From Isurus oxyrinchus (lineage: Eukaryota): DNA of 64,000 nt. Below the pieces are notes generated by a model, which searched no databases, had not been told where the DNA came from, and worked only from the letters and a program-made list of their open reading frames with translations. The position numbers were made by a program, and so were the translations under genes. This document shows positions 23,545 through 64,000 of the stretch, piece by piece. The stretch's first letter is position 1. The number at the start of each line of letters is the position of its first letter. The stretch lies in contig JANJGN010000189.1 of assembly GCA_026770705.1 (NCBI GenBank), positions 744,001-808,000 of the forward strand. The letters are read 5' to 3'.

Positions 23545-25740
23545 TACAACTTAACTAACAGACCAAAGACGTATTGAACTGTCTAAAAGTGATCTGTTTT
23601 TCAAAGAAATACAAGATTGTACACAGATCAAAAATGGCTGACACAAGTCACCTGATTGCTGATACTGTGAAGTTGATCACTTCTCTGGAAAGGTTCAAAT
23701 GAATTGCACTGCAGACCTGTTGCATGGAAGTTCACGCCTGGGGTGTGTCAGGGTCCACTTCAAACAGGGACACTCTTAAAAGGAAGGCATTAAAATGCAA
23801 AGTGCTGGACTTTGATCAGCTGTAGTTCAATCAAAACAGTGGGAACTGCTCACCAAGCAGAGAATCATCAGCCATTCAAAACCCCCTGTGGAGGATACAA
23901 TACCCCCGTCTCCTGTTGATTTATATCTTGAAATGCATCAAAGGTTTCAGAGATGCAAAGATAAAAAAATGGGAATATTTGGTCTATAACAATGAATGTA
24001 AAACATGCTGATCGAATTGACTTCAGGGATATACAGACAGGAGTTTAACAAACGGTTCTGCCAAGCAGATATTAGAGAAAGGAGGGGAAAAAGAAATATG
24101 GCAGTCTTCCACAAACACTGCTGGAAAAGAGCAGAAATGATTTCTCCCTCTCTCTCTCTCTGTCTGAAGCTAACAGAGTGTCTTCAACAATGTGCAAGTC
24201 TGAGCCAGATAAAATACAGGAATCTACAGAAAACCAACTAATTTAAAACAGCTTCAAACTTCACAGCCTACGCTGCAGTACAAGCAAACGACTCTTTTAA
24301 TTTTTTATTGGACTCTATAATTATNNNNNNNNNNNNNNNNNNNNNNNNNNNNNNNNNNNNNNNNNNNNNNNNNNNNNNNNNNNNNNNNNNNNNNNNNNNN
24401 NNNNNNNNNNNNNNNNNNNNNNNNNNNNNNNNNNNNNNNNNNNNNNNNNNNNNNNNNNNNNNNNNNNNNNNNNNNNNNNNNNNNNNNNNNNNNNNNNNNN
24501 NNNNNNNNNNNNNNNNNNNNNNNNNNNNNNNNNNNNNNNNNNNNNNNNNNNNNNNNNNNNNNNNNNNNNNNNNNNNNNNNNNNNNNNNNNNNNNNNNNNN
24601 NNNNNNNNNNNNNNNNNNNNNNNNNNNNNNNNNNNNNNNNNNNNNNGTCCCATTTTAATTATTTTTCCTCCAGTTAGGTAACTAATAAACTTACTCTTTC
24701 TTTGACTCCAACAAACATGGTTTAATTGGTTCATTCTTAACAATCAAAAAGACTTGTTTTGGAAATTGTATTTGGGGGAAAATATATTTTAAGCCTTTTT
24801 TTCAACCAACCATAATTACCTGTTAAACCTCTTAACCTCATTACTACTGAATTCAAAGCCCACATCTCAAAACATACAAGTTGCAAATTAGTTGTGACAG
24901 TTGTTTCAAGTTTCCCTCCAGGATTTGAACAGCTCAGCATTGTCATAACAGAGCTTCCTTCAACTTAGCCAATGAGCCAAAAATGTATTGAACTGTTTAA
25001 AGGAGACCTGTTTTTCAAAAGTACTAGATTAGGCACTGATCAAAAATGGCTGTCACGAGTCACCTGATTGCTGATACTGCAAACTTGATCACTTCTCTGG
25101 AAAGCTTCAAATGAATTGCACTACAGACATGTTGCATGAAAGTTCTCACTGAGGTGTGTCAGGGTCCACTTGAAACAGGGGCTCCCTTAAAAATGCAAAG
25201 CGCTGGACTCTGATCACTGTAGGTCTATCAAGCTAATGGGAACTGCTCACCATGCAGATATTCATCAATCATTCAAAACCCCTTGTGGAGGATGAAATGC
25301 CTCTATCTCCTGTTGATTTATATCTTGAAATGCATCAAATGTTTCAGAGATGCAAAGATCAAAAAAGGGATTACTTGGTCTGCGACAATGAATGCAAGAC
25401 ATGCTGATCGAATTCCCTTTGGGAATATACAGACAGGAGTTTAACAACAGGTTCTGTCAAGCAGATATAAGAAAAAGTAGGAGGAAAAAGAAAGATGGCA
25501 GTCATCCAAAAACACTGCTGGAAAAGAGCAGAAATTCTCTCTCTCTCTCTCTCTCTTTCTGAAGCTAACAGAGCGTCTTCAACAAAATGCAAATCTGAAT
25601 CAAATCACCACCAGGATGCCACAGGTAACCAATTAACTTTGAACAGCTGCAAACATCAAAAATCTACACCTCAAAGACAAGCAATTGTATTAATCATATA
25701 TTCTTTTAAATTTTTATTGGACTCTAACTTTTTAATTATG
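23545..25740. repeat. Two diverged direct copies of a ~0.8-kb LTR-like unit (23545-24324 and 24955-25740)
   Basis: Colinear similarity, e.g. gatcaaaaatggctg...cacctgattgctgatactg in both. Confidence 0.8.
24325..24646. other. Assembly gap
   Basis: N run. Confidence 1.
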
Positions 25741-30860: not shown

Positions 30861-30908
30861 TAATATTCTGCTTTTTGATGTCCTGTCCCCTCCCTTGTTG
30901 CCTTTCAG

Positions 30909-31265
30909 GAGTGACGTCAGAGGGATGGTCTATGAAGGCACTGTCTCGGAGGGCCATCAGCAGCTCTTGTGTGGTTATTCCGTGTAGCTTTGACTTTCCT
31001 TCCCACTCTTACACAGCACTGCATGGAGCTTGGTATAAATATTGGTATAGATGGAAATATACCATCACATACACCAAAGATCCCAACTATGCGATGGCCA
31101 CATTCGTGGGACGTGCTAAAATAATCGGTGACTTGGAAGGGAAGAATTGTTCGGTGAGGATTGACAGTCTCAGAGCTGAAGACAGTGATGTGTATTACTT
31201 CTACGTGGATGCGGAGGGCTACACAGATCACACTTTTACACAACCAGTCCAACTCCAGGTTCTTG
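30909..31265 (+). CDS. Gene B MAG-like Siglec V-set exon, essential Arg replaced by Tyr
   Basis: 357 nt, phase 1/1; SCVVIPCSFDFP..LHGAWY..FVGRAKIIGDLEGKNCSV..YYFYVDAEGYTDHTF. Confidence 0.92.
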
Positions 31266-31397
31266 GTAAGTCCCAGTTCCTTTCACACTCAGTCTATCAG
31301 CACAAGGGGGTCATGTTCTCATCTCAGAGCCAGGCAGTCATGGGTTGAATTCCTGCTCCAGGAGATGTCAGAACAAAGTCCAGTATGTGATCTGGTG

Positions 31398-42920: not shown

Positions 42921-43073
42921 TGGGCTTTGAGGAATCAGGTGAGTCACACACCACAGGATCCCCAGCCTCTCAGCTGCTCCAGTAGCCTGGTTATTGATAT
43001 GGCTGCTCCAGTCCTGTATCTGCAATGTTTTATACAGTCACTCCCAAACCCAACCAAACTCACACCCAACACC

Positions 43074-44625
43074 ATTCAGAATCAATAATCAAACCCCGAT
43101 CAGAATCAATAATCAAACCCCGTTCAGAATCAATAATCAAACCCCGTTCAGAATCAATAATCACACCCCGTTCAGAATCAATAATCAAACCCCGTTCAGT
43201 ATCAATAACCAAACTCCGTTCAGTAACAATAATAAAACCCGTTCAGAATCAATAATCAAACCCCGATCAGTATCAATAATCAAACCCCGTTCAGAATTAA
43301 TAATCAAACCCCTTTCAGAATCAATAATCAATCCCCGTTCAGTATCAATAAACAAACCCCGTTCAGTATCAATAATCAAACCCTGTTCAGAATTAATAAT
43401 CAAACCCCTTTCAGAATCAATAATCAATCCCCGTTCAGTATCAATAAACAAACCCAGTTCAGAATTAATAATCAAACCCCGTTCAGAATCAATAATCAAA
43501 CCGCGTACAGAATCAATAATCAATCCCCGTTCAGTATACATAATCAAACCCCGTTCAGTATCAATAAACCAACCCCGTTTAGTATCAATAATCAAACCCC
43601 TTTCAGAATCAATAATCAATCCCCGTTCAGTATCAATAAACAAACCCCGTTCAGAATTAATAATCAAACCCCGCTCAGTATCAATAATCAAACCGCGTTC
43701 AGAATCAATAATCAAACCCCGTTCAGTATACATAATCAAACCCCGTTCAGTATCAATAATCCAACCCCGTTTAGTATCAATAATCAAACCCCATTCAGAA
43801 TCAATAATCAAACCCCTTTCAGAATCAATAATCAAAACCCAGTTCAGAATCAAGAATCAAACACCGTTCAGTATCAATAATCAAACCCCGTTCAGAATCA
43901 ATAATCAAACACTGTTCAGAATCAATAATCAAACCCCATTCAGTATCAATAATCAAACTCCGTTCAGGATCAATAATCAAACACCGTTCAGAATCAATAA
44001 TCAAACCCCGTTCAATATCAATAATCAAACCCCGTTCAATATCAATAATCTAACTTCGTTCAGGATCAATAATCAAACCCCGTTCAGATTCAATAATCAA
44101 AACCCTTTCAGAATCAATAATCAAACCCCATTCAGTATCAATAATCAAACCCCGTTCAGTATCAATAATCAAACCCTGTTCAGAATTAAAAATCAAACCT
44201 GTTCAGTATCAATAATCTAATCCCGTTCAGAATCAATAATCAAACCCCGTTCAGAATTAAAAATCAAACCCCGTTCAGTATCAATAATCTAACCCCGTTC
44301 AGTATTAAAAATCAAACCCCGTTCAGTATCAATAATCTAACCCCGTTCAGTATCAATAATCAAACCCCATTCAGTATCAATAATCAAACCCCGTTCAGAA
44401 TCAATAATCAAACCCTGTTCAGTATCAATAATCAAACTACGTTCAGGATCAATAATCAAACTCCGTTCAGATTCAATAATCAAAACCCATTCAGAATAAA
44501 TAATCAAACCCTTTTCATTATCAATAATCAAACCCCGTTCAGAATTAAAAATCAAACCCCGTTCAGAATCAATAATCAAACATCGTTCAGGATCAATAAT
44601 CAAACCCCGTTCAGTATCAATAATT
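43074..44625. repeat. 24-bp satellite (tcagaatcaataatcaaaccccgt)n, ~64 units
   Basis: Direct tandem units; 8-aa periodic ORFs. Confidence 0.97.
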
Positions 44626-60099: not shown

Positions 60100-60437
60100 A
60101 CATTCACTTGCACACTCACACACCCACACCCACACAGACACACTGACACACTCACTCATTCACATTGACACACACTGACACAGTCACACACACCCACACA
60201 GACACACTGACACACTCACTCATTCACATTGACACACACTGACAGTCACACACACCCACACAGACACACTGACACACTCACTCATTCACATTGACACACA
60301 CTGACAGTCACACACACCCACACAGATACACTGACACACTCACTCATTCACATTGACACACACTGACACAGTCACACACACCCACACAGACACACTGACA
60401 CACTCACTCATTCACATTGACACACACATATTGACAG

Positions 60438-60470
<33 letters not shown>
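60100..60470. repeat. CA-rich ~60-bp tandem repeat
   Basis: cacccacacagacacactgacacactcactcattcacattgacacacactgacagt units. Confidence 0.9.
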
Positions 60471-60472
<2 letters not shown>

Positions 60473-60800
60473 CATAAAGACAGACACAAACACAGTCACG
60501 TGAGGTGAATAGTGTCGATGTATTTAAGGGGAAGCTGGATAAACACACGAGGGAGAAATGAATAGAAGGATATGGTGATGGGGTGAGATGGAGAAGGGGT
60601 GGGCGGAGACTCGTGTGGAGCAGAAACTCCAGCATGGAGCAGATGGGCCAAATGGCTTCTTTCCCTGCTGTAAAACGCAGGTAAAGTTTCAGTTGGAATT
60701 AATGAACAGGGCCTGTGTGAAATAGATTGCTAAGCAGTAGATAAGGAGGGGAGAGGCTGTGGCATGGTGCAGGATGACCTTGCGTGAATGAGGCCAGGGT

Positions 60801-60917
60801 CTAAAACATGCAGCAGATACCACAAGTCTCATTTGGTTCTCTCCAATTACAGCAGTTACAGCAGAATCTGCAGTGCCGCTGTCTGCTCATTCTCTTCTGG
60901 CGCTGCAGCAAGGAGCC
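60801..60917 (-). CDS. HAMP: Hepcidin exon 3: GSLLQRQKR|MSRQRHCRFCCNCCNWREPNETCGICCMF*
   Basis: cttttccag| acceptor, furin site RQKR, hepcidin pattern C-x2-CC-x-CC-xn-C-G-x-CC-x-F then stop. Confidence 0.95.
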   Translation of the reverse strand, partial: GSLLQRQKRMSRQRHCRFCCNCCNWREPNETCGICCMF

Positions 60918-61009
60918 CTGGAAAAGCAGGGGCACAATAGGTGAGAACATTCCGGAAAGAAAGAAGGCATCATTTCAATCAGGCGCGTCATTGGAAGGAG
61001 GATGGCGCA

Positions 61010-61820
61010 TTTCTCTAGCACCTTTCCCCTCCTCAGGATGGCCCAAAATGTTCAACAGCTGATGGAAGGACTTTTTCTGAAGTGAGCTCACCGCTGTAAT
61101 GTAGGAAACGCAGCAGGCAATTCACGCACAGCAAGATCCCACAAACAGAAATGTGATAATGGCCCCATTTTCAGTTTTTTTACCAATGTCAGTTGAGGGA
61201 TAAATGTTTGCCCCAGGAAAGTGGACATAACTCCACCCCATCCAGCCCCCACCACCCCCTCCACACATACCCCCAACTCCTGACGCACTTCATCTAAATT
61301 GTGGCCATGGAATCCTCTATATCCACCTGAGAGGGCAGATTGGTTGCCCCAGTTTAATGTCTCATCTGAAAGACAGCGCCTTCAACAGTGCAGCACCCCC
61401 TCAGTACTGACCCTCCGACTGTGCAGCACTCCCTCAGTACTGACTCTGACAATGCAGCACATCCTCAGTACTGACCCTCCAACAGTGCAGCACTCCCTCA
61501 AGACTGACCCTCTGACAATGCAACACTCCCTCAGTACTGACCCTCCGACTGTGCATCCCCCCGCCGGTACTGACCCTTCGACAGTGCAACACTCCCTCAA
61601 GACTGACCCTCTGACAATGCAGCACTCCCTCAGTACTAACCCTCTGACAATGCAGCACTCCCTCAGTACTGACCCTCTGACAATGCAGCACTCCCTCAGT
61701 ACTGACCCTCCGACAGCTCGGTAATTTCTCAATTACGCCTGGTGGTCCTTTTAACTCAGAGCTGAGAGTCGCAGAGAATCGAGCAGACACCCTGAACTGA
61801 CACTTGCAGTGCAAGTACTG
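61010..61820 (-). mobile_element. Deu-type SINE with internal 33-bp expansion (61383-61716)
   Basis: Minus strand reads cagtactgagggggtgctgcactgttgaaggcgctgtctttcagatgagacattaaac...tctgccctctcaggtgga. Confidence 0.75.
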
Positions 61821-63264
61821 GGAGCGCGCTGGTCATTATCATGCTGCTGTCTGTGAGATCTTACTGTGCGCCAATGGCTGATTCTTTTCCCACATTACAT
61901 CAGTGACCTCACATGAAAGAAAAAAGCACTTGATTGTCTGCGAAACACTTTGGGACGTCCTGATGTGTTGGAAGGCGCTAGAGAAATGCAAGTCCTCTTT
62001 GTCTTTCACTCGATCCTCTAAGGTGTCTGTTGATTAACCAGCCTCTCGGTGTATGATGTAGGCCTGGTTATAAACAGGTAGAAGGATCAAATATCAAAAG
62101 TGCTTTGGCTGACAGTCAAACCGATTGTGCATTCGGAGAGATTAGATACGGTCTGCGCACAATGACTCCAGTCTCTGGCACTGACGGCCGCCTGGGGTCT
62201 CCCTTCCACATAACACTCACAACTTGCATTTACACAGCGCCTCTGACATTGCAAAATGTCCCAGCCCACATTACCGGAGCATAAATCAGAGAGAAGTCTA
62301 ACACTGAGTCACATATGGAGATATTAGGGATAGGTGACCAAAAGCTTGGTCAAAGATGTCAGTTTTTAAGGAACGTCTTAAAGGAGAGAGAGAGAGAAAG
62401 AGAGAGAGGCAGAGAGGTTAAGGGAGGGTATTCCGGAGCTCAGGGCCCCAGGCAGCTGAAGGCACGGCCACCAATGGTGGAGCGATGGGAATCAGGGGGA
62501 CCCGGGAGATGCAGTAATGTCAGAGATTTTGGAGGAACATCGGGACCGGAGGAGGTGTTCTCCTGCTCCATATCTCTCTCTCTCTTCCTCTCATCCACTC
62601 CTCCTCTCCCTATCTCTCTCTCTCCTACTCTTCCTCTCAATTGCCCTCTCTCCCAATCTTTCTCTCCTCTCTCCCTTTTCCTGTCTCTCTCCCTCTCTCT
62701 CTCCCTGTCTCATTCTCCCACTCTGTATCTCTCCCTCTCTCTCACACTATTTTTGTAACTTTCGCTCACTCTGTAACTCTCGCTTTCCTGTTAATTTCTC
62801 TCTCTTGGACAATCTCTCTTCCCTTTTCACTTTCCCTCACTCTGCATCTCTTTAATTTCTCCCTCTGTCACTCTCTCCTACCTATGTTCTTTCCCTTTCA
62901 CCCCTCCCCGTCCCACTCTCTGTCTCTCTCTTCCAATCCCTCCCTCCCCCATTCCATCCCTCTCTCCGACTCTCGACTCCCAGCCTCTCTTTAACCCACT
63001 CCCAGGCTGGATCAGTCTCCCTCTCACTATTCCCGGCGTGGGTTACATTTAAAATTCCTGTGGGGATATGTTCACTTCCTTGGAATTGCCTCTTCCCAGC
63101 TTTGCAAAAAAAGGGGGGGGGGGCGGGGGGGGTCTCGATTTCAAACATGCCTCCTGAGTATAACCGAGACAGACTGCCACTGAAATCAGCTTGAAATCAG
63201 AAAACTTTCTGTGGAAGAAACGAGCAGGGAGAAACCTTAAAATAAGGAATGAATTTCCACCTAC

Positions 63265-63321
63265 CGTGTCCGGGGAATCCACAGATTTCTCAATCGTCGA
63301 AGAACCTAAAGCAGTGTCAAC
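63265..63321 (-). CDS. HAMP: Hepcidin exon 2 (pro-region) VDTALGSSTIEKSVDSPDT
   Basis: ttctttctttttgcag| acceptor, acg|gtaggt donor, 57 nt, phase 0/0, in frame with exon 3; exon 1 presumably beyond the window end. Confidence 0.75.
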
Positions 63322-63419
63322 CTGCAAAAAGAAAGAATTTATCAGGGAGAAAGTGAGAGGAGGATTGAGGGAGAGGGAGAGAGAGAGAGAGAGGTACAGG
63401 AGAGAGAGAGGGAGGAGGA

Positions 63420-63976
63420 CAGACTTGCATTTCTCTAACGCCTTTCACCACATCCCAAAGCATTTCACAGCCACTGAAGGATGTTTTTGAAGTGCACTCA
63501 CACTGTAGGAAATGTGGCAGCTGATTTGTGCACAGCAAGATCCCACAAATAGCAATGTGATCATGGCCTAGATCATCTGTTTTTGGTGATGTTGGGTGAG
63601 GGATAAATATTGGTGCCAGGACACCGGGGAGAACACCCCCTGCTCTTCCTCCAAATAGTGGCTGTGGGATCTTTCACACCCGCCCGAGAGGGCAGACGGG
63701 GGACTCAGTTTAATGTCTCATTCAACATTGTTGCGCTCCCTCAGTACTAACCCTTTGACACTGCAGCACTCCCTTAGTATTAACCCTTCGATAGTGCTGC
63801 GCTCCCTCAGTACTGTCCCTCCGTCAGTGCAGCTCTATTTCAGTACTAACCCTTCGACACAGCGGCACTCCCTCAGTACTGACCTCCGACAGTATAGCAC
63901 TCCCTCAGTACTGTCCCTCCAATAGTGCAACACTTCCACACTACTGACCCTCTGAGAGTGCAGCACTCCCTCAGCA
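63420..63976 (-). mobile_element. Deu-type SINE with 33-bp expansion (63722-63976)
   Basis: Same layout as 61010-61820. Confidence 0.75.
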
Positions 63977-64000
63977 CGGAGCGTTGATCTACATTATGGG

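Follow-up and report, generated by a model that had tools for sequence, protein, structure and literature searches.

Near the end of a 64-kb stretch of shark DNA (the window, which was analysed at its full length), a 49-codon open reading frame on the minus strand, at 60801-60950, resembles a hepcidin with an unusually long loop. The locus raises two questions: whether this frame belongs to a hepcidin gene, and, if so, whether its product controls ferroportin as the mammalian iron hormone does or has been turned to another use.

A hepcidin-family sequence in the last exon

The frame translates as MFSPIVPLLFQ followed by GSLLQRQKRMSRQRHCRFCCNCCNWREPNETCGICCMF and a stop. Exon 3 comprises its last 38 codons, reading GSLLQRQKR-MSRQRHCRFCCNCCNWREPNETCGICCMF-stop; the stop codon occupies 60801-60803, and the exon is preceded by an AG acceptor at 60918-60919 behind a polypyrimidine tract. 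The Pfam profile Hepcidin (PF06446) matches this ORF at 32 bits (E 1.5e-07), above its curated gathering cut-off of 27, and the alignment places 35 residues on 31 profile positions, that is, with a net insertion of four. The cysteines of the peptide form the pattern C-RF-CC-N-CC-NWREPNET-C-GI-CC. The motif C-x2-CC-x-CC-x(2-12)-C-x2-CC has a single match in the six frames of the whole 64-kb window, where about 1.8e-5 matches are expected from the local cysteine frequency, and none was obtained in 300 shuffles. The 29-residue, eight-cysteine peptide that the original prediction had placed behind RQKR is thereby borne out: the exon-3 ORF is a genuine hepcidin-family sequence, far beyond chance.

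That the frame is nothing but a chance cysteine-rich ORF in repeat-rich DNA, belonging to no gene, could be argued from its length of only 49 codons, from the repeats that surround it, and from the lack of a match in two large protein libraries. This explanation has practically no probability left, being refuted by the Pfam score above the cut-off, by the motif expectation of about 2e-5 per window, and by contigs spliced at the predicted borders, which are described below. As to the libraries, no candidates came back when the 57-codon stop-to-stop frame was used in a word-indexed protein search, a blank that is uninformative for a short cysteine-rich query. An exhaustive HMMER search with the 38-residue exon-3 peptide against 1.84 billion representatives gave nothing at E<=0.001, which is a weak test, as it missed even the teleost hepcidins with CRFCCNCC. 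In an exact-sequence look-up the 49-residue ORF was absent from the collection, which for so short a query is uninformative. The ESM Atlas gave as its best match a hepcidin cluster at 0.81, which is no more than a lead. A single-sequence AlphaFold2 model is helical, with a pLDDT of 74 and five models that disagree, and is unreliable for a small disulfide-rich peptide.

Several properties of the predicted mature peptide bear on its function. Overlapping the RQKR/MSRQRH stretch there is a second minimal convertase site, RMSR, which had been pointed out in the original prediction and is indeed present in the sequence. What it would yield calls for a correction: the peptide predicted from cleavage after RMSR would have 26 residues and start with QRH, so that it would carry His at position 3, with no hydrophobic residues before Cys1. 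The computed net charge of the 29-residue form is about +1.5 to +2 (about +1.5 at pH 7), with a pI of 8.2. By a hand count on the human sequence quoted in the original prediction, human hepcidin-25 is at least as cationic; since its charge is no higher than that of the human hormone, the shark peptide is not notably cationic. The N-E-T sequon sits ten residues from the C-terminus. A sequon at this distance can be glycosylated by oligosaccharyltransferase, though inefficiently. Glycosylation at N-E-T is possible, as judged from the motif.

Gene structure, splicing and neighbourhood

The contigs of four sequencing runs were compared with positions 60601-64000; two of these runs, X1 and X4, come from one sample (S1), and their designation as RNA was guessed. 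Contig word depth amounts to 2e5-7e5 over exon 3, the 3' UTR, and exon 2, and to approximately 650-1200 over the introns. Such depth cannot rank the parts of a gene and is used here only to argue for the nature of X1 and X4: with the spliced form hundreds of times deeper than the introns, they are not genomic DNA. In the DNA-type run X6 (organism B), contigs over the exons are absent, and dips of depth in that run are not interpretable.

The window covers the 3' UTR and the last two exons, 2 and 3, of what is probably a three-exon gene of the hepcidin family, which lies on the minus strand among Siglec-type immunoglobulin exons (Table 1).

Table 1. Positions of the hepcidin-family gene parts, peptide elements and neighbouring exons in the window
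Feature	Positions	Strand	Description and evidence
Two Ig C2-like exons	14350-16003	+	Ig_3 at 44 and 32 bits; Pfam
V-set exon	30875-31348	+	31 bits; weak CD22-like first-Ig match at 23.4 bits (cut-off 27); Pfam
3' UTR	60601..60800	-	Exon-level contigs cover 60601-60837; X4 record 9 extends past the start of the stretch
Exon 3, coding part	60804..60917	-	End of pro-region GSLLQRQKR and 29-residue 8-Cys peptide; translation, Pfam, RNA-type contigs over the exon
Cys5-Cys6 loop NWREPNET	60810..60833	-	8 residues, N-E-T sequon inside; translation
RQKR furin-type site, then MSRQRH	60873..60902	-	Six residues before Cys1; translation; convertase role predicted from the R-X-K/R-R rule
Intron 2	60918..63264	-	2347 nt; GT 63264-63263, AG 60919-60918; sequence, skipped exactly by joints in contigs
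Exon 2	63265..63321	-	57 nt, phase 0 at both ends, VDTALGSSTIEKSVDSPDT; sole open frame of three; acceptor tttttgcag|G, donor ACG|gtaggt; RNA-type contigs
Intron 1, 3' part	63322..64000	-	Contains second SINE-like element; contigs depart from the window exactly at 63322

The joint between exons 2 and 3 (60917/63265), which skips exactly 60918-63264 with GT..AG on the minus strand, was found in nine contigs of X1 and one contig of X4, although the shorter side of these contigs measures only 22-29 letters and thus falls under the 31-letter rule. It coincides with the predicted borders, is corroborated by loose ends at 60918, and connects the frame of exon 2 with that of exon 3 in phase 0. In translations and searches the two exons were treated one by one. 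At the other end of exon 2, whose first base, 63321, is the upper limit set by the original prediction, nine contigs of X1 and one of X4 leave the window sequence at 63322 for an upstream exon. Past this point they continue with 30 unlike letters, which on the minus strand and in the frame of exon 2 translate as ...AAESLLLLVE and so give the upstream exon a hydrophobic run; the end of exon 1 expected from this continuation is ...GCAGCTGAGTCACTTCTTCTCCTTGTCGAG. No exon 1 was found in 63322-64000, which is occupied by a SINE-like repeat, so that exon 1 and the promoter are placed beyond base 64000. Of the three-exon layout, exons 2 and 3 and the splice between them are supported directly, and exon 1 is known only as a contig continuation outside the window. 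Overall, the hepcidin family is spliced and strongly transcribed, and transcripts with the exact exon letters and borders of the window copy exist.

One further contig of X1 joins the exon-2 donor (63265) to a cryptic AG at 62064-62065 in intron 2 and resumes at 62063 on the minus strand; its frame reads AYIIHREAG and then stops, which makes it a minor, non-productive isoform without the hepcidin domain.

Downstream of the coding part, the 3' UTR extends at least to 60601, and in one contig about 50 nt further; no AATAAA occurs downstream of the hepcidin stop before about 59897. Just beyond the 3' UTR lies a CA-rich minisatellite (60121-60469; 62-nt units, 5.5 copies, 94% alike). Intron 2 carries a CT-rich tract and a SINE-like element whose tail is built of 33-nt tandem repeats. 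This element (61040-61740) and the one in intron 1 (63440-63980) have the same orientation, share a 65-nt core that is 82% alike, and both end in such a tail, with the 33-nt unit present 10 and 7 times, respectively; the huge contig depth of the corresponding bins in all four runs marks them as a high-copy repeat. A G-run at 63112-63132, also in intron 2, needs 10 gap letters in one contig, and its length is either variable between copies or uncertain in the assembly.

The mammalian hepcidin gene lies in the arrangement HAMP-MAG-CD22. The Siglec-type immunoglobulin exons beside the shark gene would fit this arrangement, with the CD22-like match remaining below its threshold; USF2 was not seen in the window. 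The canonical paralogue that the original prediction had envisaged nearby did not turn up either, as the 64 kb of the window contain one hepcidin motif. Elsewhere in the window, a 408-codon ORF at 42994-44220 on the plus strand has no credible Pfam family and two sub-threshold matches, and may be low-complexity or repeat-derived. Runs of N are found at 18053-18234 (182), 23118-23417 (300), and 24325-24646 (322).

Copy number and source of the transcripts

Three forms of the last two codons are present in sample S1: MF, as in the window; IF (60807 C>T), seen in X1; and IY, seen in X4, where 60805 A>T is added to 60807 C>T. If S1 represents a single animal, one diploid locus cannot supply all three haplotypes, and at least two near-identical copies must therefore be expressed. 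The expressed versions also differ in the 3' UTR, at 60639, 60650, and 60658. At 63266 the commonest junction contig has A, and the G of the window is the minor version; the change converts the last codon of exon 2 from ACG to ATG (Thr>Met).

No indexed run contains the stretch exactly, and the best holder has a fraction of 0.52 of the sampled words, as expected at about 2% divergence. In the introns, the positions at which X1 and the window differ show the other letter only, at 27/27 places (2-3.6% over three contigs), and many of these letters of X1 are found in the DNA-type run of a second organism. Since none of these places shows the letter of the window copy, the RNA contigs do not prove that this copy is itself transcribed; they may stem from a sister copy or a closely related species. 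Of what the original prediction implied by looking for an exon 1 and a transcript, the spliced transcripts and the upstream exon are there in the contigs, and it is their assignment to the window copy that did not follow.

The window copy could even be silent or defective, for example with its exon 1 or promoter missing or damaged, all of the RNA then belonging to sister copies or to a closely related species. Not a single X1 contig with its intron letters at the 27 differing places, a best run whose share of words fits a divergence of about 2%, a G at 63266 that is the minor version, and an exon 1 outside the window are all in line with such a copy. However, neither exon 2 nor exon 3 of this copy has a frame defect, both being intact and bordered by consensus splice sites, contigs with its exact exon letters and junction are present, and, because contigs drop rare variants, missing letters do not prove absence. 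We consider it unlikely that the copy is silent or defective.

Function and comparison with known hepcidins

The comparison was made with the human sequence quoted in the original prediction and with the sea bass peptides (PMC5665920), the 21 positions outside the loop being aligned by hand. With the shark peptide as reference, 14/21 of these positions are identical in sea bass Hamp2, 13/21 in sea bass Hamp1, and 10/21 in human hepcidin-25. The Cys5-Cys6 loop has eight residues in the shark peptide, with N-E-T inside, against four in human, exactly as had been claimed from the translation, and five in both sea bass peptides. In all four peptides the convertase site is separated from Cys1 by six residues. 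Within these six, only Ser2 is common to the shark peptide and either bass peptide; positions 3, 4, and 6 are R, Q, and H in shark, compared with H, F, and I in human and H, L, and L in Hamp1. Hence the N-terminus is not of the iron type, and the earlier statement that it lacks His3 and the hydrophobic residues proved correct (MSRQRH versus DTHFPI and QSHLSL).

In sea bass, ferroportin is lowered by Hamp1 (QSHLSL-C...) but not by Hamp2 (HSSPGG-C...), whose N-terminus is non-canonical (PMC5665920). When hepcidin is bound to ferroportin, its conserved N- and C-termini are buried, and its loop, which is highly variable, is largely extracellular (Nemeth and Ganz, PMC8235187). The origin of hepcidin has been put, together with that of its binding cysteine on ferroportin, in early jawed vertebrates (PMC8235187). 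For sharks, hepcidin was reported in the nurse-shark plasma proteome with no sequence given, and the supplement of that study has no hepcidin text (PMC9207270). In the searchable literature we found no shark hepcidin sequence or function, no loop motif NWREPNET in print, and no glycosylated hepcidin.

By analogy with these systems we lean towards the view that the shark form is a diverged, amplified paralogue without classical ferroportin control, a functional analogue of teleost Hamp2 that probably acts in host defence. As in other members of the family, the precursor would be secreted, and a furin-type convertase would then cleave it behind RQKR and perhaps behind RMSR as well. The mature peptide would fold as the four-disulfide hepcidin hairpin, with 8 residues at the tip in place of 4-5; an insertion at the tip of the hairpin should be tolerated. 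The absence of ferroportin control is suggested by MSRQRH, which has neither the His3 nor the hydrophobic residues 4 and 6 common to iron-regulating hepcidins. In addition, the basic penultimate residue is lost, with Met in its place, which argues against an iron function. The defence-type reading is drawn from the analogy with sea bass Hamp2 and from the amplification, and both features of the Hamp2 type, a non-canonical N-terminus and multiple copies (at least two of them expressed), are found in the shark form. Against defence one could hold the spacing of six residues between RQKR and Cys1, as in iron-regulating hepcidins, and a possible co-evolution of shark ferroportin; the net charge of about +1.5 to +2 is also unlike that of a strongly cationic antimicrobial peptide.

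Alternatively, the long-loop form might be the ordinary iron-regulating hepcidin of the lineage, its termini binding a co-evolved ferroportin and its loop protruding outside the transporter. The Siglec-type exons in the window recall the neighbourhood of mammalian HAMP, the contig word depth over the exons is very high, and both the spacing of six before Cys1 and the CCxF at the C-terminus agree with sea bass Hamp1. Moreover, cleavage after RMSR would give a Q-R-H N-terminus that recalls the Q-S-H of teleosts. The loop itself does not decide the matter: as a variable part that stays extracellular when ferroportin is bound (PMC8235187), it leaves room for an iron hormone, and a long loop, even a glycosylated one, is no argument against iron function, so that its use in the original prediction as a hint of lost iron control is weakened. 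On the other hand, positions 3, 4, and 6 of the shark peptide are not the H, F/L, and I/L of human hepcidin and sea bass Hamp1, Met has replaced the penultimate basic residue, and iron-type hepcidins are usually single-copy, whereas the shark form is multi-copy. With these points taken together, a role as the ordinary iron hormone of the lineage, which the original prediction had named as a refuting outcome, seems to us somewhat unlikely, and a defence-type paralogue remains the reading that we prefer.

A more far-reaching claim would be that this shark lineage has the long-loop peptide as its principal hepcidin in circulation, N-glycosylated at the tip of the hairpin and produced from amplified, near-identical genes among Siglec genes. 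We regard it as quite improbable. If true, it would be the first glycosylated hepcidin, and the receptor-facing N-terminus would be either unfixed as yet or re-written in cartilaginous fish. A shark hepcidin that is amplified and strongly transcribed, and in which the N-terminus is rewritten and the loop doubled and possibly glycosylated, bears both on the form of the ancestral contact between hormone and receptor and on whether the split between iron and defence hepcidins arose more than once.

Compared with the known hepcidins, the shark peptide stands as follows. Human hepcidin-25 (HAMP), the ferroportin-binding iron hormone, has the same eight-cysteine frame with a furin-type site six residues before Cys1, its mature peptide is encoded in the last of three exons, and its gene has Siglec-type neighbours, a layout and a neighbourhood that the shark gene would share. 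It differs in the loop of 4 residues without N-E-T, in the N-terminus DTHFPI, and in the C-terminus KT, where the shark form has 8 residues, MSRQRH, and MF, and is multi-copy. Sea bass Hamp1 (QSHLSLCRWCCNCCRGNKGCGFCCKF; PMC5665920) has in common with it the core CR[FW]CCNCC and CGxCCxF and a stretch of six residues before Cys1, but begins with Q-S-H-L-S-L, has a 5-residue loop, and lowers ferroportin (PMC5665920).

The closest likeness is to sea bass Hamp2 and the hepcidin of hybrid striped bass (PDB 1S6W; PMC5665920), which share with the shark form CRFCCNCC, a non-canonical N-terminus, and membership of a multi-copy family, and differ in the 5-residue loop PNMSG, reported without a sequon. 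Among solved structures, 1S6W is also the best match of the shark peptide (E 0.35), with CRFCCNCC identical and the loop longer by a net three residues. An independent origin of teleost Hamp2 is probable, so that the likeness would be one of the manner of working and not of orthology.
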